DNA of 64,000 bases, taken from positions 99,437,319-99,501,318 of the forward strand of contig NC_068981.1 in NCBI RefSeq assembly GCF_001194135.2, in the 5' to 3' direction. Numbering within the stretch: position 1 is the stretch's first letter; each line of letters begins with the position of its first letter. Below, one piece after another: positions 31,346-59,689 of this stretch. The position numbers were made by a program, and so were the translations under genes. Under the pieces are notes generated by a model. That model saw only the letters and a program-made list of their open reading frames with translations. It was not told where the DNA came from and ran no database searches. The DNA comes from Octopus bimaculoides. Lineage: Eukaryota.

Positions 31346-31561
31346 TCAGGTTTCATTGGATTTTGTCTTCGCAACATCTGTACAGCTTTTGCTTTCTTCA
31401 GATGTTTTTTTTCCTTCATTCAGGTTATATACCCAGACAGCAACATCACTGTGGGATCCATGAGCTAAGTAATGTTGATAACATTTAAGAAGCTCCTGAC
31501 AGCGTTGTTCATCTTTTTTGTTATCATAGTCAGGGTACTTCTCTTTCAAACGTTTCCGAGC
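31346..31561 (-). CDS. DUSP22: DUSP22/DUSP15-like phosphatase, coding exon 5 (ARKRLKEKYPDY...KSNET*)
   Basis: Acceptor (t)n-caag at 31563-31562, phase 0, TGA at 31348-31346. Continues exon 4 in frame and resembles the DUSP22 YRQWLKEEY helix. Confidence 0.82.
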   Translation of the reverse strand, partial: ARKRLKEKYPDYDNKKDEQRCQELLKCYQHYLAHGSHSDVAVWVYNLNEGKKTSEESKSCTDVAKTKSNET

Positions 31562-33258
31562 CTTGAAAAAAAAAAAAAAAAAAAATTTTTTTAACCAATC
31601 AAGTTTGAGAATGGCTGATATATTGAAGAACTGAAATAAAAGTCTTTCACTTGATTATATTTGTCTTTAATACTAATCAATTAAAATACAGGAAAATATA
31701 ATATTTTACAAAATATTTAATCTCTTTTCAAACAATCATTTTAACACCCATTCTGATATGGTGATCCAGCATTCATGTCACAACTCCATACCAGTACACT
31801 AGTCTCTCCTGTGTGCACTGGCCAGTAATGCCTTTCAAACTTTTTCATTTCGCTTGTAATCTATCCTTCATACAAGCTATCATAACTCATCCTGATTACC
31901 TCAGTTCCCTCCAGCCCAGCAGTGCTTTTACCATTCAGTTTATAAGACTGATCTTTACAGAGAAAGAAACCCTTTATCAGCAGAGATAACAGTTCTATGA
32001 ATTTCTTCAACTTTCGTGCACTTCATGCACTTTAATTACATCACCTGTAATAGAGACTATCAATTATGTTTACTGCACAGTTCATAAACTTCAATACAAA
32101 AGAGCTCACACTATTAACTACTCCTGTACATAAAGCATGTCTAAAGTCCTGTATTTTTCTATTGATCTAACAGAAATTCTACTGCATCTTTTTGAACCTA
32201 TTGCTTATATTGAGTATGCAATAGTCAGCTGCTACTCTGTTCCTATATCTCAAGGAAGCTTGGTGGGATTTTTGAGTTTTTGATATTAATTTACATATTG
32301 GACCTTTGCCAAATTGTTTTTGGCCCATATATCCAGGTTTAGAACTTCTTTTGCAGTTTTTTTATATTCCATATAAAAGTCTGCATGTATATGGACATTT
32401 TTATAATTTTTGCCCTGAAAGCTGTCTACAATGATGATAATATAATCAAATTTTAGATATTCTTTTTTTTATTTGTAACTTTTAAAAAATAAAATATAAA
32501 GTAGGATTGAATTGTAAACATGTCTACAATTTTTAATGCGGTAGTACTGCTTCGGGAAGCCAATGTAAAAGCAAATAAAAAGTGATGCCTAAAAAATTCA
32601 CTTTCATGTTTGATTTAGGCATCTACATATCACTAATGACTATCTCTCCCTAAATTAAATTACTTTTTTCTGATGACAATGGTTATTGCTATCTTACATG
32701 TACTGACCACCACTTAATGCCAGCTTATGGCTCAGGAGAGTTGCTAGAGTCTTCTTTGCATACTACAACTGCTAATGGAAAACAGGGTCCTGTCACTAAG
32801 AATGTTCAATCTACCACATTCAACAAAAACATCAAATATACGTTTAGTTTCACATAGACACAATATTTTGGGAAATCACTGGAAGAAGCAGACTTCATAC
32901 AGAAAAAAAAAAAGGTGATGGTGTATGAGAGAAAAAGCTGTTGGAGTATGGTGGTGACAATGATTATTGTTGTTTAGCCTCAAGTCAGCCTTAATTGAGC
33001 TGACCTATGGTCAAAGGTATTCTCCCAATTACCATCTAGTCTATATTTTTTTCAGGCATAGTGTATCTAAGACATCATTATTTAATGTATCTGTCTTTTT
33101 TTTAAGATGGTAGGATGTGATTTTAGAGAGATTTGACTATTTCAAGCAGACCAAATGACCATGTAGTGGCTTCTTTGATGGCTTCTGATCATGACGATGA
33201 TGGTGAGATGATAAATCAGAGAGATACATCCCTTTCACCATAAAATAAATTTACTTAC

Positions 33259-33430
33259 AGCTTCCAACCCATTCTCTTCATATTCTCTCAGTTGCTTTTG
33301 GAAACCATAGTTTGGGTTAGCACAGTTCCGTGCCCCTCTTATAGCATTCATAGATTCCCTCCAGCTCAGGCTTGTTATCGTCATTATATAGGCTACTGTG
33401 AGTGTTACACTTCGTGATACTCCTGACAAA
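33259..33430 (-). CDS. DUSP22: DUSP22/DUSP15-like, coding exon 4 (C-LSGVSRSVTL...NPNYGFQKQLREYEENGLEA)
   Basis: 172 nt, acceptor ttccag, donor gtaagt. The first base completes TGT, the catalytic Cys88. Contains AYIM and NPNxGFxxQL motifs. Confidence 0.95.
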
Positions 33431-33908
33431 CTGGAATTGAGATTAACCAATCAAGTAGACATATCTGGCTAAACTACATCAAAATGAAACTTGAAAACAA
33501 AATTTAAAAAAACAAAAAATAAAACAAAAATGAAAATAAGAAAAGGATAAAATTCCAGAAGATACAACTCTGATCATAAATTATTTGGCAAAGTGTTTAG
33601 AACAAGGACTGATGAAGTAAGATATTATAAAGGTGACAAAAAAATGAGAAATGAGTGTGTTGGATGGGCTAAAGAAGTGGTATACAATTTGCTTGTTCAA
33701 AGGAACAGAGGTAGTTGGTCAGTAGTTGTCTCAGCTTCAAGGGACATAAATCTTATTACAGTAAAAAAGCAAATATATAGAATTGTAGCAGCAACTACAA
33801 AATAGTTGTAAATGTCATACATTTTGTAACAAGGTCTTTTACAAGTGAGAAAGCAAATTTTTTTCATTGTGTGCAAAATGTCAATTGATAATTAAAATAA
33901 ACTCTCAC

Positions 33909-34033
33909 CAATGAATAAGTACACCACCTCCTTCTTGTCTAGCTTTGTGAATGAAGTCTATACTCTCTTCAAAATATTGGCTCAAACACTGTTGGGGATT
34001 GTCACTGGCAAAGATACATAGGTAAACTTTATC
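33909..34033 (-). CDS. DUSP22: DUSP22/DUSP15-like, coding exon 3 (DKVYLCIFASDNP...GGVLIH)
   Basis: 125 nt, acceptor ttattcag, phase-2 donor gtgaga. Contains the general-acid Asp at residue 57. Confidence 0.95.
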
Positions 34034-35440: not shown

Positions 35441-35667
35441 TTAACCCTTTAGCATTCAGATAGCTCTTGACATATAAATGTTGATTTATTCACATTGTTT
35501 TGAATTAATCATGCATAATCTCATAGTTATGAGATTTTAATGATATGGTTGTTTATTTTTAGAATAACATCATAGAATAGGTGTAAGAAGTCAGATCTGG
35601 TCAGTTTAAACATAAAACTGGTAGAATATTTAGGCTGCATATAGCCGGTTTAAATGCTGAAGTTATA
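35441..35667. mobile_element. piggyBac-like MITE (TTAACCCTTTAGCATTC start, degenerate right end)
   Basis: ttaaccctttagcattc at ~35441 and a decayed inverted end aaatgctgaagttataa. Confidence 0.55.
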
Positions 35668-36553: not shown

Positions 36554-36670
36554 AGCAAGCAATGGTTTGGCATTGTCATGAACAGCTAAAATATGAGTAA
36601 CTTGATTTTCTTTTTGTGCCTTTTCTTCTTTAGAATCATAGAAGTTTCCAATGTAAACTCCATCAAGAAT
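36554..36670 (-). CDS. DUSP22: DUSP22/DUSP15-like, coding exon 2 (ILDGVYIGNFYDSKEEKAQKENQVTHILAVHDNAKPLLA)
   Basis: 117 nt, acceptor tttcttttcag, donor gtgagt, phase 0-0. Matches DUSP22 ILPGLYIGNF...VTHILSVHD. Not in the ORF track. Confidence 0.95.
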
Positions 36671-39089
36671 CTGAAAAGAAACATTTCAAAAGAACAATAA
36701 AATTAATAGAAACAAATAATACACAGATATACCCCTTCACTCCTATAATACATTTAATGAAATGATACTTGAAATTTACCTCAATTGAACAATTTCTTTG
36801 TCCATGCTGTTATCAATAACATTTTTATATTCATATTTCGAATAAAATACTCTGCGTTGTGCATTTCAATTAATATTGAAAATAAGAAATAATTGATGAA
36901 TTTAATAAACTAATTAAATATCATTATTAAGCTGGTTTTAGATAATAACTTAACAAAAGCATTTTAAGGTTGGTGATGCTGGGTAAGTTGGTATCAAAAG
37001 TGTTAAGAAGTTACAAGCTTTTACCAGGTTACGTGTTGCATAAGTGATTCTTATCATTTAATTAACATTTTGCACAGAGATAGTTTGCACAGCCAGACCA
37101 GCTGATAATTCCTGTTCATGTCTATCACTCTCTTTTATGATATGCACTTGAAGTTTATTTCTCAGAAAAAATAATAAAGGCTAACTGTAGGATGACAGAC
37201 TTTCTCATTTACATCCTATAGTATTTTACATTTGAAAAGATTAATTCCGACTGAATATGTTTTGAAAAGACCAAATATACCACTGGCTGCTGTTTCCAAC
37301 CACAAAAATAGATTTGCAGAGCCTTATCATGTTGGAAGAGCTTAGTAAAAGATACAGTTCTTAAGGTGATGAGTAACCAGTCAGATGCAATGTTAATTTT
37401 AGTGAAGCTGGTGACCTTACCAGAGACAATGAAGAAAACTGACAGACCAATCAGTTTTCAGTGTTGTCCATCTCCTACACTGTAGACTGCCTCTTATGAA
37501 AATAGAAGAGGATGCTGAAGAATTGGGTAATGACAGTGTGATAGAAATAACAGCTATCTTTGGAAATTTATGACTAAGTAAATTAACCAACAAGATGGTA
37601 ATGTAACTGTGTTAGTTAAGTCCTGCCTGAATCTCATAATATTTTCTATTTCTTCTTGAGGAGAAAAGTGGCAAGAGCCCTAGAGCCTGTGCACAACTAA
37701 AGCCCCATAAGAAAATTAATATATTGGGTAACTTTAAATTAGTCTCAATCTCTGCCACCTACATTTGAGGTATCTCAAATAATATTAGTCCCCACATTTA
37801 CTACAGAAATATATGTTCTCCACCCCTATCCAAAATGGATCTTTACATCTGTCTCGAAAAATAAGTTTTTTCACAATATATAATTTCATGTAACATATAT
37901 ATCTCATGTTTTAAAAAAGGTATATCATGTCCTTACATGTCATACGTTGCAACCAAAAGGATCAGTATCAATCAAGAGGGTACCCTACTGCAAAATACTG
38001 CCTCAAAATGTCCCTTCCAGTACATGCCAGTATTCAAAATGGACACAAAAGTGATGGTATTTGTGTTTGCATGATTAGGTAGTGGTATATTGCAACTATT
38101 CCTAAGACAAGAACAGTTGACACCATCTGATATAGGGCTGCATGTACTAGGGCCCAGTCAAGGCATAGTTATGTGTTACTAATTGTTCACTGTGCTAAAT
38201 GTAATAGTTTAACCAGACAAAACTTTCCAGTGCCTGTTCTCCAAATCATAAATCAAATGGTGCAAAGGAGAGCAAACAATGGTTTGTATTTTGTCTTGGA
38301 AATTGCTTGCCTTGTAAGATTTTCTCTTTTACAGTAGATTCACAACTGCAAAGGCCACAGTCAGTTATGGCATCTAAACAAGGATGAGATAGAGAACACT
38401 AAACGGAGTAAGACGTTTGACAGATTGTCTGAACATGAAAACAGTACAGTACACAGAATCTATTGTCTAGCATTAGTGAGAGTTGGGGAAGAGGTTAGAG
38501 AATGATACAGGGATTAGTTTGAGGTCTCACAAAGGAATCATACGAGAGACTGAAAAATTACAAAATGTACTTACGGAGAATAATTAATGTGGACATTTTG
38601 GTTAACCTTCAGTTAACTACAACTATTTTTTTTTTCATTTCTTTGCCAGGGTCAGAAACTGGAGGTTAACCGAAATTTTTTTTAGGCAAAGAGGACATGC
38701 TTTCCATGAATTGGCAATTATGGAATTACATCCATAATGCAAACTTCTTGGGAGTCATAGAACTCATTATGAAATGCTAGGCTCATTATGATCTGTCCAA
38801 GTCAAACATACAGCAAAGGTTAGAGATTTACAAGAAAAGACGGGATCTGCTATAAATTTAGTATTACTCAGCATCATCTCAAATTAAATTCACCAGTAAT
38901 TGTGTGGATTATTAAGTTCAGAACTATCTAAACTACTCCGTGGTGGAGTAGGCAACATTCGCATTGCTAAGGATGATTTTAAACTTTTTTAGTCATTGTA
39001 AAATGAAGATTAAATGATCAATGTAATGAATGGATGGTTGGAGGGACGGATAGGCGGACAGTCAGTCAGACAGAAACAAACATGAAAAT

Positions 39090-39104
39090 GTTACTATAGG
39101 CAAC
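39090..39104. promoter_or_regulatory. RFX X-box-like motif (GTTACT ATA GGCAAC) in DUSP intron 1
   Basis: Fits GTNRCY-N(0-3)-RGYAAC. Motif match only. Confidence 0.35.
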
Positions 39105-40281
39105 ATTAGCTCATAAGCAGTGTTTAACACAAGGTTTCTTTTGAAGCGTTAAACAATTTCGAATATTACTGGATTTGTCAAATGTTACGAATTTTATGTT
39201 TACATTCTTCAGGTTCATAATTTCTATAAAACTGGTTCGCAATCTTCAATTTGCAAAGAACCAGTGAAAATATATAAAGAGACCATACATTTGTAATGTG
39301 TATCGGTTATCAGTAAACAGAATGAGTAACTGTAGCAGTCGATCGATAACTGGCGGGTAGCACGGTTAGTATAGGAGCAGTAATAGGTTTTATTGATACA
39401 TGTTTACAGCAATATTCCAGTGGTGGGTACTGAAACACTGAGAGTCATACGAATGTCACAAGACATCAGATCCACTGTAATTCATTTATTGTTATTGTCA
39501 AAAGTCATTATTATTATATATTAGAAATCAATACTAGGGTTAATGTAATCGCTCAACGGCTCCCTCAAAATTGTTTGCAGCGTGGCTAAATTAGAAACAT
39601 TATTAATAGTTACACATTTGTATTTTGTATATACATAATTTTCCCTACCCTTTTTCATTCATATAATTCAGTGTAAGCCCCTCCTACACTTTTTTGTGAC
39701 ATTACCTTGTAATGTCACTTCATCGTCGCCCTTATGGCAATAATAAAAGACAACATTATTATAATTATTATCGTCATCATCTGCTAGCCATGATGTAGTC
39801 GTAGTTGTCATCACATTGACTCAATTACCCTCGAAAATACTTATATCAGGGTAGGAACGATTCATATTGACAATCAAAGTTACGAAAAGATAGTTATTTT
39901 AACTATTTTGAAGAGAAACCAAATTCTACAGAGAAATATTTTAAGGGCGAGAGAAAAGATGCTTAAAGAGATAATCAAGAAGTAATTAAAATCAGTTGTC
40001 TGGAAGTTATAATAGTGAAAATCAAATAAAAAGAAAGAACGATTCATTTGACGAAGGGAGAAATATTCACACCTATTGTTTATTATTTCATGACGTTATT
40101 TCTAGATAATATTTGTATATTTTCTAAAGTAAATTATTCTCTAAGTTTCATTTTCTAAAATCAAATGCTTTTGAAATCATATTTAAAAAAACATTACAGT
40201 TGTAAAGGAATAAATGTTATTATAAACTGTAAGAAGGCTGTGCTTTATAACCATCAAATAAACAGTAGAGTTATTGCTTAC

Positions 40282-40302
40282 CTTGCTCATTCCAGACCCC
40301 AT
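40282..40302 (-). CDS. DUSP22: DUSP22/DUSP15-like, coding exon 1 (MGSGMSK)
   Basis: ATG GGG TCT GGA ATG AGC AAG followed by gtaagc. Matches the MGNGMNK/MGNGMTK start of DUSP22/DUSP15. The total spliced protein is 216 aa. Confidence 0.92.
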
Positions 40303-40934
40303 GAATCTTCTGCTTTTGACTCCCGCTAAAGACAAGACACGTTCAAAACACGCCATGTTCGAACGAGCTCTTTCTCTCGCTTTTATACTCAGACTATTCT
40401 CTCCTACTCATCTCTCCCCCTTCGCTTTAATTTGTTATATTTGCCTCATACTCTCCTCTTCCAACTTTTCCTTTTCCCTCTCACTATCCATCTCTACTAT
40501 CCCTACTCCGACAGCTCCTACCCTCACTCTTTAACTTTCAGTATTCTCGCTTTAAACTTTTCTTTGGCAAATAGATTATGTAACGGACTCCTTTCTTCCA
40601 TCTCTTCTCCCATTTCCTTCGTTTTCACTTCCTTTATCTTTCTTTCCTCTATTTCAGTCTTCTTCCTTTTCCCTATACTCTCTCCTTTTTATTTCTTTTT
40701 ATATTGTTTTTCTTTTCTTTTCATCTCAGGCAATGAATCCTCGCTTTGTTTCTATAGTGTACTTCCTTTCTTCCTTCTCTTCCCCTATTTTTCTTTTCTC
40801 TTTTCACAATGCTGTCTCCGTTTTCCTCTCTCGCTTATCTTGGTAATAAACTATTAATTTGTCATCAATTTTTCTCTCACTCTTTATTTCCTCCCCTTCT
40901 TTAAGTGTCTGTTAATATAAACGTAATGTGATCA

Positions 40935-40948
40935 GTAACCATGGAAAC
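40935..40948. promoter_or_regulatory. RFX X-box motif (GTAACC AT GGAAAC) between the divergent DUSP and TTLL9 genes
   Basis: Exact fit to GTHNYY-AT-RRNAAC, 633 bp upstream of the DUSP ATG in CpG-retaining sequence. Confidence 0.55.
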
Positions 40949-41699
40949 GACAGCAACAAAGTATATAGTGTTTACAATCTACACATTGACCATGGTTTAT
41001 TAGCTGTATGATATTTATTGACTAGTTAAGAAGAGTTTATCACGGCCTAGATCTCTTAAGTGTAATACTGCGGCCCTCGTCGAGCGGACTTAACATCAAG
41101 AGCATTTCAGCCACGCCCCTCTCGTCTTTGTTTACACTGAGGCCTGCAAAGCAATGCAAATTTTAATTTTAAACCTAGGTAATCCTGAGATTGGCATCAC
41201 TCATAACCTTTGTAAGGCATCCCAGGCTGGTTTGAATATCTGTGTCAACGGCTGCAGGAAAAATAGAATAAAATAAAATGTAAAAAAACGTGGATGAGGA
41301 AACAATTCTAGATGGCTGTGGCAGGTATGGAAATGGTTACACGACAGATTTCATTACTCTGTGGGAAGAAGTGGAATCGATCTTTAAACATTTATGAAAA
41401 ATAGTGGCTTTATATTTGCTATTTACTGCAAAAACAGAACTCAGTAAAACCGGTCAGTGAAATTTGCACAGCAGTTCAAGCGCAGACAAGTAGAATAATT
41501 AATAAATTCATAGTAAATTCACGGTGTTTTTGGTTAATTTGAAACGTAAGTTATACCCGTTAACTTGATAAATCCTGTCAGCGCATGTACTGTTATGCAA
41601 ATTTGACTAACCGGTTGAGATGAGTTCTAATTTGTATACAGTGTAAAATAGATGCTTGTTTGCTTCACGCTCTTGTTTGATGGGGCTGGAGTCCTCCCA

Positions 41700-41950
41700 G
41701 GTTAGTGGTCCCAGAGGCGTCATCATGCATAGGGCCGACCTGGTCCACCAGTGCTCTCCCATCGCTGGCGGTTTCGTGGCAGCCCCTCTGCATCTTCCAA
41801 GGTGACGTCGAGCCTCAGGAGATCTTCTACAATGACGTCCAGCCCTCTGGTGAGGAGCCTACCACGAAGCTTCTTCCAGCCTACAGCTGCTGCGTCGAAT
41901 GAAAATAAAGCGGGAGACAGAGGTCATGTCTGTATCAGCGCATGCGATGG
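41700..41950. repeat. Interspersed repeat copy, CpG-intact; paralog of 13145-13400
   Basis: ttagtggtcccagaggcg...ccaaggtgacgtcgagcc...gagatcttct. Confidence 0.8.
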
Positions 41951-43365
41951 GAAGCTATGAGGTATGAAGTAGATATAAACTACTAATTTCTCTGTAGACA
42001 AAAGATGGGCATTCTTTCTCCGATGAAAGACTAAGAAGACTAGAAACTGTCAGATCTATCTAACTTTTTCTGCCATCAGGTCAAAAACCAACCAGTGGTG
42101 GTTTACTTCTCGCGACGAGACTAAAACCGGGATCTTTTCGTTTTGACACATAGGAGGCCTGATTGTATAGATGTTTTATATGCCAATTGAGAATATCACA
42201 ATTTTATTTATTTATATATTTATTTATTGGCAATTAATAACAAAAAAAGTTACGAGCCTTAAATTCATTAAGTCAGCTATAGTTATAAGGGAAATATAGA
42301 CTTACAAATTTTTAATTCCGACTCCCAAATACTACAAAAACAAGCAAAATCTAAATGTAATTGTAGAGATACGACTAGGTGTTCTTTGAAGGGAAATTGT
42401 CAAAAATATAGTATACAGAACAGGTATAAAATCAGCTAACTGTACAGTAAAAACGTACATCGGAAGTTACAGGATGTTGCACAAGCACATGGCTCTGAGA
42501 GCACTGCTTTTTAAAAGAGAAACAGCCGAAAGCTAATGGAGCCGGTTATGTCATTCACTAATGGATATTACGATCTGTACTCTCTTAATGCTTTACTTTA
42601 AAGCATGAGTATAACAACTGATTATTAGTATCACTATGCCTAAGCGAAATAATGTTTTGTGTGTGTGTGTGCGTGCGTGCGCGCGCATGTATATTTCTCT
42701 TATACACACGCACACACACAGACAGACAGATTCGCGCACACATTCACACACACACACACATATAAAGAGACAAAGAGACAGACCGCGCGCGCACACAGAC
42801 AAATTATATAAACCTTCCTGTTGATAATATGCACAGTAAAAAAAGTACACGTACTCGTAAAAAAGAAAGGTTGGATCTAAATGTATTTATTGAAACTAAC
42901 GCTAAAATAAATGGTGGAATTGCACGGTTATTATAAAAACTATAACGTTGTTGGAAGTTTGTAGTGAAACATGAACTATAATACCGCTTTTGAAATAGTT
43001 TTTCTGACGCGTTTGATTCTTGAGAAGGTATAGATACACTTATGTAATACTGGATGTGGAGTTTTAGGAGATAACATCTTTGAAATCTATATTTTTTGTT
43101 AGACGTTCGTTACTTCTATGTTGAGAGTTGTAATTTAATACCTTTATCTTTCCGACAAGAAGTGAATGCTCCGAAGATAACACTGTCTATATTGTCCAAA
43201 AACTTGAGTTACTACATCTGCATGGGTACACATATGTGTATATGTGTGAGTGTGTGTGTGTATTCACATACATATACACATATGTGTATGCGCCTAGATG
43301 TAGTGATCAGTTTTGGGGCAATATTGACAATGCTTTTCTAGAGCGCGTTCATTTCTTGACATGTG

Positions 43366-43397
<32 letters not shown>

Positions 43398-44262
43398 TAT
43401 TCTATTTTTTAATTATTATAAATCTTCCACTGAGGAGGGAGCCGGTTTCCAACAAAGATACAAGGCTCCGTCTTTGAGATGTAGTTTACACAGACAAATT
43501 CACGTTTGGAACTTGAGAAAAGTCTTGCATATTTTTACTGTTCCACTCACAGATTGCACTTGTAATGTACGAATTAGCTAGTCGATTTCTCTTTCTGAAA
43601 ATCCCAGTTTATCCAGATTCTCCTCCAAGCATTTACCAACAAAACCAAGTGCTCCAATTATTATTGGTATGAATATGAATTTATAGTCTGGATATAGAAG
43701 CTGGAAGTTTATAAACTTTATACAATATCATAACCTCTACTATTGAAATAATAATATATAGGAGTTGAACGATATGTTATGGAACTGAGCCTTACAATTA
43801 TTTGGATATATTTTTTCTGGTGCATAAATACTTATCATCTCTCTCTTTCTCTCCTCTGTGTGTGTGTGTGCGTGCGCGTGCGCATGTGTAATCCAAATAA
43901 TAAGACAAAGAAATACTTCAACACATCTTTAATGATCAGTTCCAATTGATTCTGTACCAAATCTGCTTGCAACGCCAGTTTAAGCAACAATTCGAAGCGA
44001 AAATTTACGTAATGTTTGCAGTTTTAGACATTAAAGTGGCATTTCATCAGACTTGCATCAAAGGTGGGCTCTTACATTGTGCCAATGTAAGAGCGCACCT
44101 TTTGATGCAAGCCTTCACTAAATCCACACGATGGTTTCACCGTCATGAAACAAGGATTTTCTACACTTAAAGAATTTCGGTGTTAGTCTGAGTTTTGATT
44201 GCTCAGAACTCGGGTTGAGTGTTTCATTGGAAATACCCTATCTTTAAATCCTGCTAGGACCT

Positions 44263-44302
<40 letters not shown>

Positions 44303-47395: not shown

Positions 47396-47399
47396 AAAG

Positions 47400-49560
47400 T
47401 GGCGACGAGTGATTCGAAGGTTACGTTGGTCATTAACAATTTTTTATGATACAAAAAATTCGTTAGTTATGGGAGACCTACTAGCTGACGTATTACAGTT
47501 GCAGGAGTTGCACCAACAACTACAACACAATCAGTTCTGGAACTGATGTTGAGGTGGTCGGGAAACACTTCAAGTTCGTTTTCTCCAGATGGCTTAGCGA
47601 ATGTTATAACTGAATTTAGTTATAACCCAGAAGAAGGTATAACCTTTTCGGTGTACTTCAGTAGATACGAAGAAATATTCAAGGAAGAATGCAAGTGTTG
47701 GACAGACGATGAAAAAGTGAGACTACTGTTACGGAAACTAGGTCCTTCAGAACATGAAAAATACTGCAATTTTGTCTTACCTAAAAAAAAAAAAAAAAAA
47801 AAAAAACATGTTTCGAGGAAACAATTGAATTGCTATCCAAAATGTTCAGCGATAAGAGTTCCCTGATTAACACTAGCTGGGAGTGTTGGAACCTAGTAAA
47901 AGAAGAGGACGAAGATTTTGTCATTTATGCCGGAATCGTAAATAAAATGTGCGAAAAATTTAAACTGAAGGAATTATCTCCGGATACGTTTAAATGCCTC
48001 GTCTTTGTGCAAGGTTTGATAGCAAACAAAGATGCAGAAATACGTGAACGGATTCTTACAAAACTAGAACATGAGGACCAGAATTTAATCCTCAGGCAGT
48101 AGCAGAGGGATGTCGAAGAATTATCAATTTGCGACAGGATGTAAAGAAGATTGAAGAAAAAATTTCTAAAGTACAGACATGTCAACCGGGAATAAATAAA
48201 GAAAAAGGAATGTCATGGCGAAGTTCATGCTATGGGTGTGGAGGTCTGTATTTTAAGAAAGACTGCCCATTTCAAACATGGAAATGTTTTAGCAGTCAAG
48301 AATAGGACATAAAAACTCGCACTGCACAGCGAAGCAAGAAAGGTTGGAAAAAAAATTCTTCCAAAAAGGTTTTTTCAATGGAAAGTCATGACGATACCCC
48401 AAAAAGAAAGTACGTGTATGCAAAAATAAACGACGCGAACGTGAAACTATAACTAGACATGGGTAGCGACATTACAATTTATTGATACCGACATGGGGAA
48501 GAAAATTGGTAAACCTACATTAAAGAAAACATCGAAAAGTGCACGAGGCGTTACAGGTGAAAGATTACACTTAGGCGAAATGGTAAGAGACATTACATTT
48601 CGTTATAAAACCAGTAAAACAAAAGTGTTTGTGTTAAAAAATGCAACAAACTTGTTCGGCACCGACTGGATGGAATTGTTTCATTGAATGTCTGAAAACG
48701 TGTCACTATCCGCTACCTACTCCGGAAGATATTTTTGTGAAGTTAAACGGGGACAAGTTATTTTCGAAACTGGATCTCTTCGATGCGTACCTGCAAATTA
48801 GAGGAGACGAGGAATGCTCAAAATGCCTAACAGTGAATACGCTTAAAGGACTATATAGATTTAACAGATTACCATTTGGTCTAAAGGTCACACCTGCAGT
48901 TTTACAACAGGTTATGGGTGCAATGTTTGCGGACTATGAATTCGCAGTTCCATACTTGGATGATATATTAATCAAAAGTGAATCTCGTGATCAGCATGTC
49001 GAGCATGTAAAAATGAAAAAATAAGAGATTACGGTTTCACACTGAGTGACGGAAAATGTGAATTTTCTTACCTAAAATTAAGTATTTAGGACAAATTATC
49101 GACAGGAACGGACGACGATCGAACCCGTCGAGGGCAGACGCAGTTAAAAAATATACCTTCTCCGGCAAGCTTTTCTAGGTCTAGCGAATTATTATCAAAA
49201 TTATATACCATATATGCATAAATTGAGGGCTCCACTTAATAATTTGCTAAAAAAGGATGTAAAGTGAAATTGGTCAAATAATTGTCAAAAGGCGTTTGAC
49301 GATATTAAAAAAATATTAGTATCGGATTTGTCGCTGGCTCATTTCGATCCTGCAGAGGAGTTTATAGCTTCTGACTCTTTTGAAGAAGGCGATGATTCAT
49401 GCCTCACGTTCTCTGAAAAACTACAGTCAAATAGAGAAAGAAGCTCTAGCAATCATTTTTGCTGTGAAGAAATTTCACAGATTTTTGCACGGTAGAAGTT
49501 TTTGGCACCAAACTGATCACCGACCATTAGTATCAATTTTGGGGTCGAAGAAAGGAATTA
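47400..49560 (+). mobile_element. Degenerate Ty3/Gypsy (Mag-like) internal region: PBS, gag, protease, RT, RNase H; integrase and 3' LTR missing
   Basis: PBS-like tggcgacgag at 47400-47409. gag YNPEEGITF...KVRLLLRKLG, CCHC remnants, protease LLLDMGSDIT, RT GLYRFNRLPFG and YLDDILI, RNase H NYSQIEKEALAIIFAVKKFH...TDHRPL. Confidence 0.93.
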
Positions 49561-49574
49561 TAATTATTTAAAGC

Positions 49575-49830
49575 TATATATTGCTAAGTCCACACTTACA
49601 GTTTGCATCTCCAGTCGGGAACCTCCATCTTGTATGTTGATCTACTGGAATCTGTTCAGAGAAATCTAGCCAAATACCTTCCATCAGTCTCTTAGCATAT
49701 CTACAACGTCTTGCTTCTCTGGGCATCGATACAATAAGGTTTCGATGTCTAGCAGTTGATTTTGTAGAAACCCTTGGTCACCTTTTTGAATTCAATATCT
49801 CTACCATCCATAGATATGCTTATAAAAATA
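49575..49830 (+). mobile_element. CR1-type LINE ORF2 C-terminal remnant
   Basis: Contains DLLESVQR, resembling the CR1 LESVQRRATK motif. Confidence 0.55.
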
Positions 49831-50665
49831 AATAGAAATAAAAATAAACAGCGCAAATTGTCGAGGCATGAAATAAATTACCCGCATCCTTCAAAAACCA
49901 TCCTTCTTGAGATTTGCTAATGCTACTCCTGACGTCTCATGCACCACTTCTTCTTTGTAGTTCAATCCCTCTTTTCTGTCTTTCTGTATTTTATACTGTG
50001 TACTATGCATACACTTTTGGCCATCATTGTTGCTTTTTGTCCCGCTTTTACTTTTGTCACAAGCGACCATATGATGTTTCATCTATACTGATATGATAGC
50101 TGCTTGAGTTAAAGAATGAAGATATGTTTCTATGCTGTATGAAGAAATAACTGAACAATACCTGCGAACATTTAATAGAAGAATTTATTGTCGCACATAA
50201 CAAACTGCGTTGCCATTTTCAGTTGACAACAGCAATAATTACAGACTGGGAGAGAGATACTGCTCTGAGATTATAGCAAGCTATTGGTATGGCAACATAC
50301 GGATTGTCCAACATATGTGAAAACAATTGTGCTCTCTTCGTGGCGACAGTTCTTGGTCATCTATCTTATCCTTCTGTTCTGGCCGTCTACCTAGGCCGTC
50401 TGGTTGCAAAAGTTCGCACCGAACGGTTTATATAGGGGACCAGAAGCCAAATCCTAGAATGTCCGAGAAAACCTTGTCCACGCCATTGCTTCATGCTGAT
50501 TGAGTCGATTAATAGACCAATCACGTGAAACTATGGTGGTTTGTTCGTGATGTATGACCTCATGTCCAGGGATTCGGTTTCGAATCGCCGCTACACTCTT
50601 TTCCGACGAGTTGTAGTGCACCTGAGCACTATATACAATCAGCTTATTACTATAGAAGAGATAGG

Positions 50666-50696
<31 letters not shown>

Positions 50697-53600
50697 AATA
50701 AGAGAAGAGTATTAATATCAGAAATATCTGAATAAAACGAGGTGCATTCATTAAAAAGTAATTATTTGCTGCCAACTCTGCGGTGGTTTGCAAATGATGT
50801 CTCTCAAACTGTCTTTGTTGTCATGCTCAGAAACTGAGAAGATGGTGAACTAGTGAGATTATCGATTGCGTGCGTGTTTTTACAGTTGCTCAGGTTGATA
50901 TATAGTCAAGCGTTGAGTAAGTGTAGATGTGAAAATTGAGTATAGCTAGACAGACGCGCATAACACTTTTGCAGATTGGATTAGCATCTGACGATAATTT
51001 AACAGAGATACCAGGGGATGAGGAGTGATAAAGTGAGTGAGTTTTGAGTAAAACAAGTACGGATTTTTTCATGTCAAAGTTCATAGACAGTTTCCAGAAA
51101 ATCTTCCAAGTTGAAAAAAACCTTCAATGCACTGTTACAATGATCTATTTCAGTATATTAGAGTATTGATCGGTTTAGTGATTCAGGACAAAACTGAACA
51201 GTTATCTGCAATTATTGGAACACAAAGGTTCTCGAATATAAATTCAATAAAACCTTGTTTAGATTGATATATAATAGTTACACTTTAATCAGAGTGGCAA
51301 TAATGTACAGAAAATAGCCCATTCCTTCCTTTGCTTGTTAACAAAGTGCATTGAAGGTGAAATAAAGTGAAATATTGTTTTCTTTAATATTGTACAAAAG
51401 TTACGATTTCTTGTCGTGAGCTTTCAAACTGACTATGCAAACGCCCACCTATTATTAGAAGTTATTGTATCGTTGAAGCAAAATAGTTGTCGTTACTATT
51501 CCCAATAACATTAATGATTCTGACCCCCTTTTGATAGATGGTGCCTTTTAATATTAAAAACGGACATTAGTAACTGCATACGATACTAATTAGACGGTTC
51601 TTATCCTGTCACCGACACTGCTGTGTTTATTGTAAAGATACCGTTTAAATAACTCATACCAACAAGTAATAAATATTAATTCCTTTTACTAATGGCACAA
51701 GGCCAAAAATTTTAAAGAAGCGGGATAGTCAACTGCATGTACTCTAGTGCTCAACTGGTACTTCTTTTATCGACCCGAAATGATGGAAGACACAATCGAC
51801 CTCGGCGGAATTTGAACTCAGAACGTAAAGCCGGAAGAAATGCTGCGGAACATTTTGTCCGGCGTGCTTACGATTCTGTAAGCTCGCCTCATGCAGTAAA
51901 TATTAATGGTAGATATTGAACTACAGACGAATGTTTTTATCTGACAGTTACTATTTAAAATTCTCTTATGAGCCTGGTGAAGCCAACGAGAACCCACTCC
52001 AGAGTATCTTTTCCAGAAGATGAAGTAAAATATTCAAACAAATGATTAATTGAAAAAAACAAAACAAAAAACAACAACAACAAAAACCCGTTATTACAAG
52101 ACAGGCGTTCAATCTCCGTTAAGAGAAAGACAAAAACAAACTTATTGCTATCGAGGGGAAATGGGCAAATAACATACTAAATTTATGAAATTTAAAGATC
52201 AAAAATATTGTTTTCTCACGAAAGTAAAAGGTTAACTGTCGCAGAAATAGTTGATTGAATAAATCTATGATCAGGACTTGTTTTATCGACAACGAGAAAT
52301 GAAAAAGCAGTCGGTCCAAGTTAATTTGAACTCAGAACATAACTAATAGACTTGACAACGCTGGTCATGCACTCCTAAGATGTACACGTGTTTATAATAG
52401 TAGAGGCGTCCAAGTGATTTGCTGACACCAATATTATAGAATTTAAAATGCAAGTGATATTTTTTTTTTGTTGAAAGGCATTACTTATAAAAAGAATATC
52501 CAACAACATCATGGTGAAAATATGCTTCACGCTTTGTTAAAGACCGCTTTACGGCAAAAAGTTTATTTGTTGATATAGCAACCAATGATGTCAAGGTAGG
52601 TAATTCCCAAACTTTACTGTGTTTATCTTTCGATACGCGAATAGGTAATATTATTTACGGAAACTAATGTACCACACAATCCAGTGGTGTAAGAGTAATG
52701 AGATACACTCCTCTGGTGAGTTGTGATGGTGGTTTCGTTTCGATTCTCAGATGTTGTCGTTACACATCACTTTTATTATTCTCCAAAGAAAGTGTGAAGG
52801 TGACATCTTATTTCCCTTACCTCCGTCACCAGTCAGATGGTGTTTGGTTGAGACTTGGGCCTAAATTAAAATCCCTCACGCAAAATCAGCTTCGTCTGTC
52901 ATCTCCCAGAGTTAGCAAAACAAGTACCTGCAAGAGGCGGGATCGAACAATTTCCTTATACACACACGCACAAACATAACACACGCACGCAATGGAAACA
53001 ATATTTCCTTTTAGGTTAGAAATAAGCGTAACTTCTGATTAACGTTGTTCATTAATGATGAAAATGCACAATCGACCTCGGCGAAATTTGAACTCAGAAC
53101 GTAAAGCCGGAAGAAATGCTGCGGAGCATTTTGTCCGGCGTGCTTACGATTCTGTAAGCTCGCCTCAAGCAGTAAATATTAATGGTAGATATTGAACTAG
53201 AGACGAATATTTTATATGATAGTTACTATTTAAAATTCTATTATGAGCCTAGAGAAGCCAACGAGAACTCACTCCAGAGTATCTTTTCCAGAAGGTGAAG
53301 TAAAGTTAGAGAGAAAAAGTTCGTTCGATTTTGGATAACGTTTCTTCTTTGAGGCTATCCGGCTTAACATGAACACTTGACACCTTAGGTGCCTTTAGTG
53401 GACGTCACTATGTTGTATCATTCAGCCCAGTTCTTCGGTTTGAGGATAACTTCCTGCCCTCACCCCATTAGTTTTGTAGGCTATATAATTATGAGTTCGG
53501 CTTTCTCACCTGAATGGATGGCAGGGGCATAACTATAGTTTGTTGCCCATCTCTATTTTATTTTTTCAACCTTTTTTAAAATGTATATTTTTAAACAAAA

Positions 53601-54042
53601 ATTTAGTTTTCAGTAATGTCGGTAAAATTAGGTGGTGGTGGTGGAAAGTTTTTATCGGTGGTATTTCGACTCACCTCCCTCTCTTTTTGGATGAATTTTT
53701 GTGGAGATGCGTTCCTGGAGGTAATTCACAACTCCGACGAAAAAAAAAAAAAGAAAAAAGTTTTATTAATATAATCGTGAAAAATGTACGTCTGTATTCT
53801 ATTTAAAAATACACATTTTAAAGAAAGTTATGAAGAAATAATGTCGGCGATGTACCGAACTGTAGTTGTGCCGGTATATTAAACAAAATTTCTTTTATAT
53901 GTTTTGGTCATTAGAATACGGGCCACAACCTCGATGGGCTTATTTCAATCTGGTACTTATTCTATTAGTTTTTTTTTTTTTTTACTGAACCACTAGGTTA
54001 CAAGATAAAAACAAACCAATAAAGTTTTTATTTCTTTATTGC

Positions 54043-54258
54043 CCATAAACACAGAGGGGCTAAAGATAGAGGGGACAGACAAAGGGATTAAGTCGATCAC
54101 ATCGGCTCCAGTGCGTAACTGGTACTTATTTAATCGACCCCGAAAGGATGAAAGGCAAAGTCGACCTCGGCGGAATTTGAACTCAGAACGTAACGACAGA
54201 CGAAATACCGCTAAACATTTCGCTCGGCGCGCTAACGATTCTGTTAGCTCACCGCCCT
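54043..54258 (-). mobile_element. SINE family A, CpG-intact copy
   Basis: ccccgaaaggatgaaaggcaaagtcgacctcggcggaatttgaactcagaacg. Confidence 0.9.
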
Positions 54259-54806
54259 ACAAACCAATACAAGTTGTCAAGCAGTTAGAGAACACACATA
54301 CACAATATATGCAAATATATTACATAGGCACAAACAGATGTATACGGCTGTCCAAGGAAATTTCATAAGTCACATTTGTATAGTAAGTAGTTGAATGGAT
54401 ATAAACCCTTCCCCACTCTATCTCGCCCTTACAACCTTACCTTTTCACATTTCCACACAAACCGACAGGAGACGGTTCTTGCCAAAGCAATGACTAAAAA
54501 AAAAAAAAGGATCAGTCTAAGGGGCATAACTCATATAGGGTTAAAAGCTAACCTTACTTTTTGAATGTTTTTCATTCCCTTTTGTTTTTTGTTCCGGATG
54601 TGGTGTTTGAGACTGCCTGTGCAAAAGAACCGAAGTGATACTTGTCCGATCAGCGAAGTCTGACAAATATTAAATTATTCTTCCATTCTAGGAAGAATTT
54701 TGTTTTGTATGAAACCGCCCGGAGGAAAAACAAAATTGCGATTATGAATGCTGTATAACATACATACATACATACATACATATGTGTGTGTGTGTATGTA
54801 TGTATG

Positions 54807-55475
54807 NNNNNNNNNNNNNNNNNNNNNNNNNNNNNNNNNNNNNNNNNNNNNNNNNNNNNNNNNNNNNNNNNNNNNNNNNNNNNNNNNNNNNNNNNNNNNN
54901 NNNNNNNNNNNNNNNNNNNNNNNNNNNNNNNNNNNNNNNNNNNNNNNNNNNNNNNNNNNNNNNNNNNNNNNNNNNNNNNNNNNNNNNNNNNNNNNNNNNN
55001 NNNNNNNNNNNNNNNNNNNNNNNNNNNNNNNNNNNNNNNNNNNNNNNNNNNNNNNNNNNNNNNNNNNNNNNNNNNNNNNNNNNNNNNNNNNNNNNNNNNN
55101 NNNNNNNNNNNNNNNNNNNNNNNNNNNNNNNNNNNNNNNNNNNNNNNNNNNNNNNNNNNNNNNNNNNNNNNNNNNNNNNNNNNNNNNNNNNNNNNNNNNN
55201 NNNNNNNNNNNNNNNNNNNNNNNNNNNNNNNNNNNNNNNNNNNNNNNNNNNNNNNNNNNNNNNNNNNNNNNNNNNNNNNNNNNNNNNNNNNNNNNNNNNN
55301 NNNNNNNNNNNNNNNNNNNNNNNNNNNNNNNNNNNNNNNNNNNNNNNNNNNNNNNNNNNNNNNNNNNNNNNNNNNNNNNNNNNNNNNNNNNNNNNNNNNN
55401 NNNNNNNNNNNNNNNNNNNNNNNNNNNNNNNNNNNNNNNNNNNNNNNNNNNNNNNNNNNNNNNNNNNNNNNNNNN
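54807..55475. other. Assembly gap (N run) flanked by a (TATG)/(TG) microsatellite and a SINE
   Basis: N characters. Smaller 10-N gaps occur at 20840-20849 and 57268-57277. Confidence 0.99.
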
Positions 55476-55805
55476 TTCGATTCCCAGACCGGACATTGTG
55501 AGTGTTTATTGAGCGAAAACACCTAAAGCTCCACGAGGATCCGGCAGGGGATGGTGGCGAACCCTGCTGTACTCTTTCACCACAGCTTTCTCTCACTCTT
55601 ACTTCCTGTTTCTGTTGTGCCTGTAATTCAAAGGGTCAGCCTTGTCACACTGTGTCACGCTGAATATCCCTGAGAATTACGTTAAGGGTACACGTGTCTG
55701 TGGAGGGCTCAGCCACTTGCACGTTAATTTCATGAGCAGGCTGTTCCGTTGATCGGATCAACTGGAACCCTCGACGTCGTAAGCGACGGAGTGCCAACAA
55801 CAACA
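55476..55805 (+). mobile_element. tRNA-derived SINE family B, 5' end lost in the gap
   Basis: Near-identical to ~22088-22417, with a (CAA)n tail. Confidence 0.92.
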
Positions 55806-56644
55806 GTGATCATCATCCAGTTGGGCAGCTTGCTCAGACTAATGCAACTTTTCCATGCCAGATGTCCTGATCAAGCAATGCAGCATGGGTGTTTGACTTG
55901 GGTTTTAGTCACATTGGTCTTTTGCTAGCTGAAATGTCTCATCTGTGCATGCCATGACCACAGACGATAGAATAGGTTACTAACTGAACTGGTTGATCAT
56001 GGGCATTGACTGGTTGTATGTTCATCTGTTGAGCATCTGAGGATATTTGCCATTGATTCAATAAGTTCACAGGCTGAAATAGTTTGCATCCACAACGTTG
56101 CATCCTGTGATCTCAACATAATCTGAAAAATTGTAAAAGATCAGTAGTTGAAGTATATTCTGACTGTAAAGAAGAAGGCCAGTTTTTGTGATAGCGTCTA
56201 TACTATGCACATTTTCATTCTTAACATTATATTATCCCTATCTGAGTTAAAATAGATGTTGCAGTAATTTTCCTTACATCATATTCATAAATAGCACAAA
56301 GAAGTGAGGTCATCTGGAAAGAGCCACAGTAATAATGATACTAAGAGTGAGGAGTATAAATATGGTTGTGATGGAAATAATAATGGAGTTGATGATGATA
56401 TGCTAACTATTTCTCTCTACCTGAAGTTAAAATCTTAATACAATATTATTATTTGATTTCACATAGAGCAGATGGTTAACTGATAAAGATGGTAGTTATA
56501 AAAAAAAAAGAAAAGGATGCTATCTTTCATTTCTCAAAAATTTCCAAAGCCATCTTATCTTTGAAGTAAAATATTTCAAACTTATGCTTGAGTTTCTTTT
56601 CTCTAATCAATTTCTATCATTTTGTTTTTCATTCTAGATCCGGT

Positions 56645-56685
56645 ATGGGTGAACTAAAGAAATGTTTGAAAAATTCAAAATTGCT
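56645..56685 (+). CDS. TTLL9: TTLL9-like, probable first coding exon (MGELKKCLKNSKL; exon starts at 56638)
   Basis: Acceptor tttgtttttcattctag, ATG at 56645, phase-2 donor gtaagt that matches the phase of the next exon. The peptide itself is not recognisably conserved. Confidence 0.6.
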
Positions 56686-57378
56686 GTAAGTTTTACACAT
56701 CTATCATTTTACTAATGTCAACCACTTAACAGTGTGTGCTGGGTGAAGGGTGTAGCTGATCATATGGACTTTATTTTATCGACTCTTGAAGAATGAAAGA
56801 CAAAGTTGACCTGTATTAAAACATTTTTTATTGTATATAGGTGTATGAAAAACGTTTCAGTTCAGAAAAACCATAATTCAATATGATTTGTTGTGGGTTA
56901 ACCAGTGTCTCAGCTAGAATTTGTGCATGATCCTTGCTTTTAGAATTTGTGCATGTTTGGATGGTCCTTGCTTTTGTGGCTTTCCTCCCTAAAACATATA
57001 TAGGAAAGTTGGTTATACATCATTAGATGTATACCTGACTTTCCTATATAAAATTAGCGCTTTTACACTCCAGACCATCAACTTAAACATTTATTCAGGT
57101 GGTCAATATATGCATCTTTGGTTCTTGTTGTTACAGCTTCTGTGTGTGTGAGCATAGTTGTTGGGACGTTGTTATGTAGATGTAAGCGAGCTGTCGAGTG
57201 TAAGTCCGAAAGATGGAGAGTGACAGCTAAACACGTAAAGAGACTGTCTCCAGAGTTGGAATGTTGGNNNNNNNNNNCTCCAGAGTTGGAATGTTGGAGA
57301 CACTGCTTGACACGTCCATGCTCATGGCTGGCCGACCAAGAAAGAGATAGAATTAAGCGGGAAAGCTTGCTTGTTTAA

Positions 57379-57469
57379 TTCCACGCATGCGTGAGACTAC
57401 GCATGCGCACGGCGTTACTACAGGGTTCCACGCATGCGTGAGACTACGCATACGCACGGCGTTACTACA
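57379..57469. repeat. 47-bp tandem repeat x2, CpG-rich, with palindromic cores
   Basis: ttccacgcatgcgtgagactacgcatgcgcacggcgttactaca at 57379 and 57426. Confidence 0.9.
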
Positions 57470-58456
57470 CATATATAAAAATGTACCAACCCTTCCTCCA
57501 AAATGGTACCTCATAGAGTCTGTCCTTCTCTCCTTTTAGCTATACTAGTGCGTTTAATGTTTTGGAAAAATCATGAGTAGCATGGAGTTTCTAGAGGGAT
57601 GTGTTTCTAAAAGCAAGTGGTTAGATAAAGTCTTCAGTATGAGTTCTAGGAGAAGTAAGTAATTTGATTGATAAATAATCAACAAATGTATAGCTGTTGT
57701 TTAACTCCAGATCAACCCTGATGAAGCATACCTATGAATCAAAGGCATTTAAGCTGTGACCACCCAACTTGTTTAAGGATATGTCTAAGACTACATTTAT
57801 CCAGTGTACCCTTTCTTTATTTAAGACACTACAACAATGATTTCCAATGCTTCTGTCACCTCATCACCCTAGCTCTCTATGCTTAAGGTGCACAACACAC
57901 AAAGTACACATTCTAAATAATCCTTTCTACTATAGGCAGAAGGCCTGAAATTTGGGGAAGAGGTATAATCAATTATATTGTCACCAGTACTCTACTGGTA
58001 CATATTTTATCGATCCTGAAAGGATGAAAGGCAGTCGACTTCTGTAGAATTTGTACTCAGAATGTGAAGATGGACAAAATACCACCAAGCATTTCATCCG
58101 ATGTACTAACAATTCTGCTAGCTTTTGAATTTAAAACCTTGTGATACTCTTAATTATCACCTAGAAGATCCTGGTTAGAGGCCACTATGGCAGAGTATGA
58201 TTTAAAGAATGTTTGGCTGCCATTTGCTGGGGATGAAACCACATAGAAGTTACTTCATTGGTTCATTTATTGCAAAGCTAAAGGAGAAACAGAGATATTC
58301 ACACACTGGGCTAGTAGGTTATAGTGTTGATGAGTAAATGTCTGTCAATTAGGGTCAAAAATCTGTTGTTACCATCCATATTTGCAGAATGTTATATTTA
58401 CTGAAAGATCTACAAAACCCTTATTATTTCATTATTCTTTGTTGCTCTCATTATAG

Positions 58457-58543
58457 GGAACGTCAGATACGTTTTAGGTGTGGTATTCAAAACACTGTCT
58501 TTGATGTATTACAAGCACGAGCAGGCTGGCAGGAAGTGGTAAG
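58457..58543 (+). CDS. TTLL9: TTLL9-like coding exon (ERQIRFRCGIQNTVFDVLQARAGWQEVV)
   Basis: 87 nt, acceptor cattatag, donor gtatgt, phase 2-2. Aligns to human TTLL9 [25 protein letters not shown] as recalled. Confidence 0.88.
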
Positions 58544-59577
58544 GTATGTTGATAGTTTTTACAATTTAATTTGTGTGTGGTGATATTAACACTTTTATTG
58601 TGTATAGAATTACTCTTGTTATGTAGTATATTCCTTTGGTAGTTGCCTAGTTTAACCCCACCGCCTGGCATTGTGAATGCCTTAAGTGGAGTTCACTCTG
58701 TTGCAAGCATTTGGATCAGGCTCCCTCTCATCAGTCTGTGAGGTCTTGTAGTGAGTCATGAATTCTGGCTTCCCTCCTGACTAAAAGAAAATAGAAAAAT
58801 GCCAGCATGGAAGGCAGACATTAAACAATGATGATGATAATGTTATTCTGTTCCTTACCTTTATGGTTAGTCACATTATCAGCAACATCAGCATTAAGAA
58901 CAACTACAACAACAACAACAATTGCAAAAAAACAATTCAATTTACTTAGTTTCTTCTACAGATTCATCAACAAGGGACCGCTACAAGGTTGCTCAACTTG
59001 GTAAAAATAACAGCCAAATCTCCCATTAATCATTCTCTGCCGTTGTAATGGAAAGAAGGGTTGGATAATACATGCAGTCCTAGATGCAGTATATTTGAAT
59101 AATAAGTTGAATGTCCAAGGCTGCAATTTTCTTTATTGTAGATCTACCCTGCTTTCTCTGTTAACCTTCCTGTAATTCTACTGCATCTCTTATGTGTTGT
59201 GTCCCCAGCTTGCACTGGGTACACTGTATGGAATCTCTATTTACACCCTTTCTACATTTCAAACTTGAAGGAATTAGTGTCTGCTTGCTTTCTTACTTAC
59301 TAGAACTTTGGTCTTTGATAACTTAACTTTAAAGACCCTTTCATTCTTGGTTTTGCTTCCCCACCTGGAATTTCTTTTCTAATTCTACTACATATTCAAC
59401 TATAAGAACAATGTTATCAGCATAGAGGAGTTCCTATGGGTTCTTAGTTTTAAACTCCTCTGGAGGACAATGATACACACACACACACGTGCGCATATAT
59501 ATGTATGTATATCTATGTTGTGGGTGTGTGTATATTGTAATATTGTAATATTGTAAATCGTGTTTTAACTTTTACAG

Positions 59578-59689
59578 TGAAGAAGACTGGGATTTCTTTT
59601 GGTGTGACCGAGAATTCTCAAAAGACAACTACACAGGATTGTACCTGCATGAACACCAGCGGATGCTTCATTTCAGAAACCATCATGAG
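59578..59689 (+). CDS. TTLL9: TTLL9-like coding exon (EEDWDFFWCDREF...YLHEHQRMLHFRNHHE); gene continues beyond the window
   Basis: 112 nt, acceptor ttttacag, donor gtaaga. Matches TTLL9 EWDFYWCD...YMDEHVRISHFRNHYE. Confidence 0.92.

Follow-up and report, generated by a model that had tools for sequence, protein, structure and literature searches.

A 64,000-nucleotide stretch of the Octopus bimaculoides genome (NCBI RefSeq assembly GCF_001194135.2, contig NC_068981.1, positions 99,437,319 to 99,501,318 of the forward strand), hereafter termed the window, contains a complete gene for a phosphatase of the DUSP15/DUSP22 type and the 5′ end of a gene that matches TTLL9. The two genes are transcribed away from each other on opposite strands, and the same pair is found side by side in distant bilaterian lineages. 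That the DUSP-TTLL9 linkage is ancestral to bilaterians and predates the protostome-deuterostome split, though it can be lost, is well supported by a survey of other genomes. As to why it has lasted, we lean towards an ancestral linkage kept under moderate cis-regulatory constraint, plausibly through a promoter region that serves both genes.

The phosphatase gene

A combination of tblastn and direct reading revealed that the DUSP gene is complete and consists of five coding exons on the minus strand, from ATG 40302 to a stop at 31346. These are the ends given in the original prediction, an earlier note on this DNA made from its letters, and tblastn together with the splice sites proved them correct. 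All exon boundaries have canonical AG/GT splice sites. The exons are as follows.

40282..40302, minus strand: DUSP15/22-like coding exon 1, encodes MGSGMSK, an N-myristoylation-type start
36554..36670, minus strand: DUSP15/22-like coding exon 2
33909..34033, minus strand: DUSP15/22-like coding exon 3, ends in TG, with which the catalytic Cys codon begins
33259..33430, minus strand: DUSP15/22-like coding exon 4, finishes the HCLSGVSRS catalytic (P) loop
31346..31561, minus strand: DUSP15/22-like last coding exon, stop codon included

All 216 amino acids of the translation match (100% identity) the O. bimaculoides protein named "dual specificity protein phosphatase 22-B", and the translation contains a DSPc domain (PF00782) at residues 12-140 with an E-value of 1.2e-31. 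The HCLSGVSRS loop is intact and follows the HCxxGxxRS pattern, with the catalytic Cys codon (TG/T) split by the third intron between exons 3 and 4. The candidate start MGSGMSK, encoded at 40302, matches the MGxGMxK motif (Gly2 myristoylation) of all relatives. The public DUSP model starts 18 codons further upstream at an in-frame ATG, 40356, and the resulting extension (40303-40356, minus strand) is also found in Argonauta, where it is conserved (MACFERVLSLAGVKSRRF vs MARLEQVLALAGVKTKGI); translation from ATG 40356 would remove the Gly2 myristoylation site.

Comparison against PDB chains gave 189 bits for human DUSP22 and 149 bits for human DUSP15, followed by DUSP10 as the next best at 80 bits. 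Judged by its sequence, the octopus gene is a member of the DUSP15/DUSP22 subfamily of atypical dual-specificity phosphatases.

The 5′ end of TTLL9

Only the 5′ end of TTLL9 lies inside the window, on the plus strand. The public annotation describes a 475-residue TTL-domain product (PF03133) whose coding sequence starts at window position 42971 and whose catalytic exons lie beyond 64000; between the second conserved exon and the window end at position 64000, no further TTLL exon was found. Three exons are placed in the window, the first of them known from the annotation.

42971..43027, plus strand: annotated TTLL9 first coding exon (MNYNTAFEIVFLTRLILEK), donor AAG/GTATAG; annotation only
58457 or 58467 to 58543, plus strand: TTLL9 conserved exon (…IRFRCGIQNTVFDVLQARAGWQEVV), acceptor at 58456/58457 or 58466/58467, donor AAG/GTATGT
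59578-59689, plus strand: TTLL9 conserved exon (SEEDWDFFWCDREFSKDNYTGLYLHEHQRMLHFRNHHE, SEEDWDFFWCD…HFRNHHE), donor GTAAGA

The two conserved exons are joined by the AAG/GTATGT donor and a TTTTACAG acceptor, giving a spacing equal to that of human TTLL9. The 67-residue TTLL fragment was run through an exhaustive HMMER search, which returned 278 matches, and among the best 10 of these 278 every named match is a TTLL9 (frog, carp, platypus, cat and haptophytes). A profile search found only proteins named TTLL9, all of them short fragments, in addition to one Elysia entry that is called TTLL5 by NCBI but TTLL9 by UniRef. Over both searches, the named top matches, all TTLL9, come from frog, fish, platypus, cat, coral, flatworms and protists, and a word-indexed search with the same fragment found a single genomic open reading frame (ORF), from another octopus. 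The fragment scores 73 bits with 49% identity against human TTLL9, compared to 38 bits with 33% identity against human TTLL1; the human TTLL9 sequence used here agrees with the cat TTLL9 sequence. A TTLL1 identity was therefore rejected, given that the named matches are all TTLL9 and that TTLL1 scores lower, and the assignment to TTLL9 in the original prediction holds against TTLL1 or another clade of the family.

At 42971, an ATG opens a run of 19 codons that ends at a GT donor and is phase-compatible with the acceptor 58466/58467. The peptide encoded by this annotated exon is hydrophobic and not conserved, unlike the short Lys-rich first exons in the limpet Patella, the annelid Owenia and the crinoid described below. 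At the other end of the gene's portion in the window, an 18-bp tandem repeat (GTAAGAAATCTCCATGTT, 4.4 copies, 59690-59769, plus strand) starts exactly at the donor of the exon that ends at 59689; the GTAAGA donor itself is the first unit of the array, and a donor-like GTAAGA recurs further along it.

The region between the two genes

On the annotated model, in which the DUSP gene starts at ATG 40356, the octopus start codons are separated by 2.6-2.7 kb. The features between the two genes are given below.

40303..42970, no strand: region between the annotated starts, ~2.7 kb, a candidate bidirectional promoter
43028..58456, plus strand: TTLL9 intron 1 by annotation, ~15 kb, with retroelement debris and both assembly gaps
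~45263-46830: debris of a reverse transcriptase of the long interspersed nuclear element (LINE) type, in TTLL9 intron 1
~47546-49571: gag, reverse transcriptase and RNase H debris of a long terminal repeat (LTR) retroelement, in TTLL9 intron 1
38500..54806, no strand: CpG-retaining domain, observed/expected ~0.65-1.2
54807-55475: assembly gap of 669 N, with an ACAT/TG microsatellite on its left and a dispersed repeat on its right
57268-57277: assembly gap of 10 N, with the same 20-mer CTCCAGAGTTGGAATGTTGG on either side

The Pfam matches between DUSP and TTLL9 are confined to degenerate retroelement fragments (RVT_1, RT_RNaseH and DUF7083), and scans with Pfam, Rfam and a tRNA search found no other Pfam-recognisable ORF, Rfam family or tRNA there. 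A hidden host gene between the two was thus rejected, retroelement debris being all that is present. The original prediction had the two genes diverging from an intergenic region with no other recognisable host gene. The absence of another host gene stands, but by annotation most of this region is TTLL9 intron 1 and the starts are ~2.6 kb apart, not ~18 kb.

Analysis of CpG content revealed a ratio of observed to expected of 0.7-1.1 in 40303-42970, compared to a window mean of 0.46. The gene bodies on both sides are CpG-depleted, with 0.05-0.25 over DUSP (31-38.5 kb) and ~0.2 over TTLL9 from 55.5 kb onwards. This profile fits methylated gene bodies that would flank an unmethylated 5′ domain common to DUSP and TTLL9. 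Whether transcription of TTLL9 begins near 42971 or closer to the conserved exons, the profile is compatible with either.

Continuity of the octopus assembly

The window is AT-rich (35.6% G+C), and its part 21346-50356 is 100% identical to the O. bimaculoides chromosome CM046601.1 of GCA_001194135.2, where it corresponds to the reverse strand of a 29-kb retrieved locus; a window position w converts to position w + 99437318 of that record. Three runs of N occur in the window (20840-20849, 54807-55475 and 57268-57277). The last two separate the DUSP gene from the conserved TTLL9 exons, but neither falls in a coding exon, and therefore the reading frame is unaffected.

These gaps bear on whether the octopus adjacency is an artefact of assembly or annotation, in which case the TTLL9 exons would be joined to DUSP through the two gaps only and the exon at 42971 would be spurious. 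Beyond the position of the gaps, such a reading could point to the non-conserved peptide of that exon and to the CpG ratio, which drops from ~1.0 to 0.2-0.45 precisely where the 669-N gap lies, so that the domain boundary coincides with the gap. By contrast, the identical 20-mers at both edges of the 10-N gap indicate an unmerged 20-bp contig overlap, across which the sequence is effectively continuous. Moreover, the assembly is at chromosome level, and its annotated gene model spans both gaps. Independent support comes from the same pair in the same orientation, free of gaps, in two other lophotrochozoans, Patella and Owenia; a misjoin that happened to reproduce this arrangement would be an unlikely coincidence. 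Altogether, we regard an artefact as very improbable.

Two repeats lie next to these gaps. A dispersed repeat of ~330 bp sits at the right edge of the 669-N gap, with copies at 55476-55805, 22089-22415 and 4005-4367 that share 89-93% identity, and a 47-bp unit (1.9 copies, 97% identity, 57379-57469) lies shortly 3′ of the 10-N gap, within TTLL9 intron 1.

The linkage in other species

Synteny was surveyed by exact-protein look-up with 10-kb flanks, followed by tblastn on the returned DNA. For all lineages but the crinoid, the distances are those between the two start codons.

Octopus bimaculoides (cephalopod): head-to-head, 2.6 kb
Patella caerulea (gastropod): head-to-head, 1.7 kb, TTLL9 product of 442 residues
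Owenia fusiformis (annelid): head-to-head, 3.7 kb, TTLL9 product of 438 residues
Human DUSP15/TTLL9: 5′ ends abut or overlap
Anneissia japonica (crinoid): same strand, DUSP at 10001-17024 of retrieved locus L004, then TTLL9 (436 residues) at 20477-27024 after the DUSP stop, 3.45 kb, no N between
Pecten maximus (scallop): no TTLL9 within 10 kb of DUSP
Nymphon (sea spider): no TTLL9 within 10 kb of DUSP
Styela (tunicate): no TTLL9 within 10 kb of DUSP
Desmophyllum (coral): no TTLL9 within 10 kb of DUSP

No gene is called between DUSP and TTLL9 in octopus, Patella and Owenia. In human, one 644-bp differentially methylated region (hg19 chr20:30,458,515-30,459,158) is assigned to both DUSP15 and TTLL9, and a variant at hg19 chr20:30,461,617 belongs to TTLL9 intron 1 as well as to the DUSP15 promoter. 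Both annotations bear out the earlier statement that the human genes adjoin and diverge. Two further loci reach too short a distance: the cuttlefish DUSP contig ends 2.9 kb upstream of the gene, where the linkage is not visible, and the lizard TTLL9 locus has no DUSP exon in the 5.6 kb upstream of its first conserved exon, a span too short to inform on linkage.

Could the adjacency have arisen independently in each lineage, or could the neighbouring TTLL genes be non-orthologous? The differing orientation in the crinoid is the sole hint of this. The TTLL neighbours in Patella, Owenia and the crinoid are nearer TTLL9 than TTLL1 exon by exon, for example with 81-83% vs 43-56% identity in the same exon, and their annotated products of 436-442 residues fit TTLL9. 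Moreover, we infer that under random gene order a given gene would be the immediate neighbour with a probability of ~1e-4 per genome, and repeated adjacency would accordingly mean descent. We consider independent origin scarcely credible. Chance cannot account for the same two orthologues lying side by side in Mollusca, Annelida, Echinodermata and Chordata, and the linkage therefore predates the protostome-deuterostome split.

On this point the original prediction is well supported, with a divergent pair in a gastropod and an annelid and an adjacent pair in a crinoid, and its claim that the pair persists in a coleoid holds for O. bimaculoides itself. It had looked for divergent adjacency in several phyla, which we found in Mollusca, Annelida and Chordata but not in the crinoid, where the genes are in tandem. 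It had also named a pair unlinked in other molluscs and in invertebrate deuterostomes as a sign of coincidence. Patella and the crinoid, the sole linked invertebrate deuterostome, have the linkage; the scallop and the tunicate have no TTLL9 within 10 kb.

In Owenia (retrieved locus L003), the TTLL9 exon that encodes WDFxWCD…HFxNH is present in two adjoining versions (4777-4670 and ~4400-4256, minus strand), which could be alternative exons used in a mutually exclusive way or the result of an exon duplication.

Constraint or inertia

We propose that the octopus orthologues of DUSP15/22 and of the axonemal tubulin polyglutamylase TTLL9 stand 5′-to-5′ in an arrangement inherited from the bilaterian ancestor. 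Its persistence would depend on one compact promoter region common to both 5′ ends, so that a breakpoint between the genes would harm the expression of at least one of them, and the pair would then belong to the "coregulation" class of conserved ancient microsyntenic pairs (CAMPs). Such pairs are enriched for 5′-5′ orientation and short spacers, which has been ascribed to bidirectional promoters (Irimia et al. 2012, PMC3514665). Of the five linked lineages, the crinoid is in tandem and the other four are 5′-5′, either with a spacer of 1.7-3.7 kb or with 5′ ends that overlap. In addition, the first description of DUSP15 had it restricted to testis (PMC3394735), and TTLL9 is a polyglutamylase of flagella (PMC3873882), which makes their joint expression in sperm plausible. 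Co-regulation of DUSP and TTLL9 from a shared promoter is plausible as well. The constraint would be moderate rather than absolute, as the linkage has been lost in some lineages and the orientation has changed in one that kept the adjacency.

Several observations weigh against this reading. A strict bidirectional promoter does not allow the tandem order of the crinoid, in which DUSP is followed by TTLL9. In four of the nine informative lineages (scallop, sea spider, tunicate and coral), the 10-kb flanks of DUSP contain no TTLL9. The genomes of Owenia and Patella rearrange slowly, and neutral retention is common in such genomes. Alignment of octopus with the 2.9 kb available 5′ of DUSP in cuttlefish brought up DUSP exon 1 only and no conserved non-coding sequence. 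Finally, the exon at 42971 comes from the annotation alone, and should it be wrong, the octopus spacer could reach 18 kb.

The lost linkages, the altered crinoid orientation and the lack of conserved intergenic sequence over the 2.9 kb compared all favour an alternative in which the linkage is ancestral but has been kept by inertia alone, as a leftover of bilaterian gene order under no regulatory constraint; so does the general tendency of the limpet and Owenia genomes to keep much of the ancestral order. However, the pair also survives in human and octopus, whose genomes are both heavily rearranged, and does so in 5′-5′ orientation, with the two 5′ ends close together or overlapping; Irimia et al. 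(PMC3514665) tied this signature to coregulation. We hold retention by inertia to be a real possibility, though the less likely one, and an ancestral linkage under moderate cis-regulatory constraint to be somewhat probable.

If the pair is indeed held by a shared promoter, it would be one more deeply conserved bidirectional pair, surviving in a heavily rearranged coleoid genome, and it would provide a small anchor for reconstructing the ancestral bilaterian gene order. It would also hint that a phosphatase about which little is understood is regulated together with a tubulin-modifying enzyme of flagella. In mammals, both genes are linked to sperm.

Relation to DUSP15 and DUSP22

The invertebrate DUSP proteins that we compared are all somewhat nearer DUSP22 than DUSP15, except that of the sea spider, which is about equidistant. 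In a neighbour-joining tree of the DUSP catalytic domain (24 sequences, with a single DUSP15 sequence), the position of DUSP15 has only 44% bootstrap support, too little to place it. The invertebrate gene adjoins TTLL9, which is the neighbour of DUSP15 in human. Co-orthology of the single invertebrate DUSP to DUSP15 and DUSP22 is consistent with both the similarity scores and the neighbouring genes, and if the pair is held by a shared promoter, the linkage would provide a synteny argument for this gene as the pro-orthologue of the two.

A second neighbour appears in the coral Desmophyllum pertusum. Its DUSP15/22-like gene (10001-16302 of retrieved locus L005) is followed, 2.7 kb downstream and on the same strand, by an IRF gene (18971-26302), which was called by tblastn to the IRF DNA-binding domain with an E-value of 1.9e-34. 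The neighbour of human DUSP22 is IRF4, and in the stickleback block Foxq1-Foxf2a-Foxc1b-Irf4b-DUSP22-Exoc2, Irf4b adjoins DUSP22. The coral is the only invertebrate with this linkage in our survey; no IRF gene was found next to DUSP in the octopus window, nor within 10 kb of DUSP at the other invertebrate loci.

Because the coral DUSP-IRF linkage resembles the vertebrate DUSP22-IRF4 linkage and TTLL9 adjoins DUSP elsewhere, these data suggest an ancestral TTLL9/DUSP/IRF block that was later split between the two vertebrate paralogues. In its fullest form, the eumetazoan or bilaterian ancestor would have had TTLL9 and DUSP15/22 in divergent orientation with IRF downstream of the phosphatase, and after the vertebrate genome duplications DUSP15 would have kept TTLL9 while DUSP22 kept IRF4. 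The DUSP-TTLL9 half would be held by co-regulation of the phosphatase with, and perhaps its action in, the cilia and flagella programme. This extended scenario is speculative and we think it rather unlikely as a whole; if true, it would imply a functional link, so far undescribed, between the DUSP15/22 phosphatase and axonemal tubulin glutamylation.

Other features in the window

Apart from the pair, the window contains an intronless ORF of 448 residues for a WD40 β-propeller protein (22965-24311, plus strand), with Pfam matches restricted to WD40 and propeller families. It resembles WRAP73/WDR8. The ORF lies within a CpG-retaining island of its own at 21-24 kb and may be a retrogene. Further upstream, two ORFs of 214 and 91 residues (7889-9085, plus strand) resemble, by eye, a reverse transcriptase with a GIY-YIG-type motif after it and may belong to a Penelope-like retroelement.

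Comparison with known systems

A literature search found no paper that brings TTLL9 together with microsynteny or with a bidirectional promoter; the pair list in the supplement of Irimia et al. was outside this search, and the pair may already be listed there. The papers that name both TTLL9 and DUSP22 list them as separate genes only.

The octopus locus most resembles the human DUSP15-TTLL9 pair at 20q11.21, in which the same two families are placed 5′-to-5′ with a very short or overlapping spacer, and the octopus phosphatase shares with human DUSP15 the catalytic loop and, if translation begins at ATG 40302, the MGxGMxK start. They differ in that the octopus protein is nearer DUSP22 (189 bits) than DUSP15 (149 bits), and that the first intron of octopus TTLL9, at ~15 kb, is filled with retroelement debris. 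Moreover, vertebrates possess two or more DUSP15/22 paralogues, of which only DUSP15 adjoins TTLL9.

The vertebrate DUSP22-IRF4 linkage (human 6p25.3; stickleback Irf4b-DUSP22) finds its likeness in the coral DUSP15/22-like gene with IRF next to it. Unlike the DUSP-TTLL9 linkage, it lies on the 3′ side of DUSP and not on the 5′ side, and the octopus window has no IRF.

Among general classes, the pair is most similar to the coregulation class of CAMPs (Irimia et al. 2012), such as HSPE1-HSPD1, in which two unrelated genes are adjacent across phyla, mostly 5′-5′ and with short spacers. It departs from that class in that co-expression and a shared promoter are predicted for DUSP-TTLL9 from its arrangement, that the crinoid orientation differs and that the pair is absent in several lineages. 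Nevertheless, DUSP-TTLL9 can be regarded as one more conserved ancient microsyntenic pair beside the several hundred already known, a real and incremental addition rather than a surprising one.

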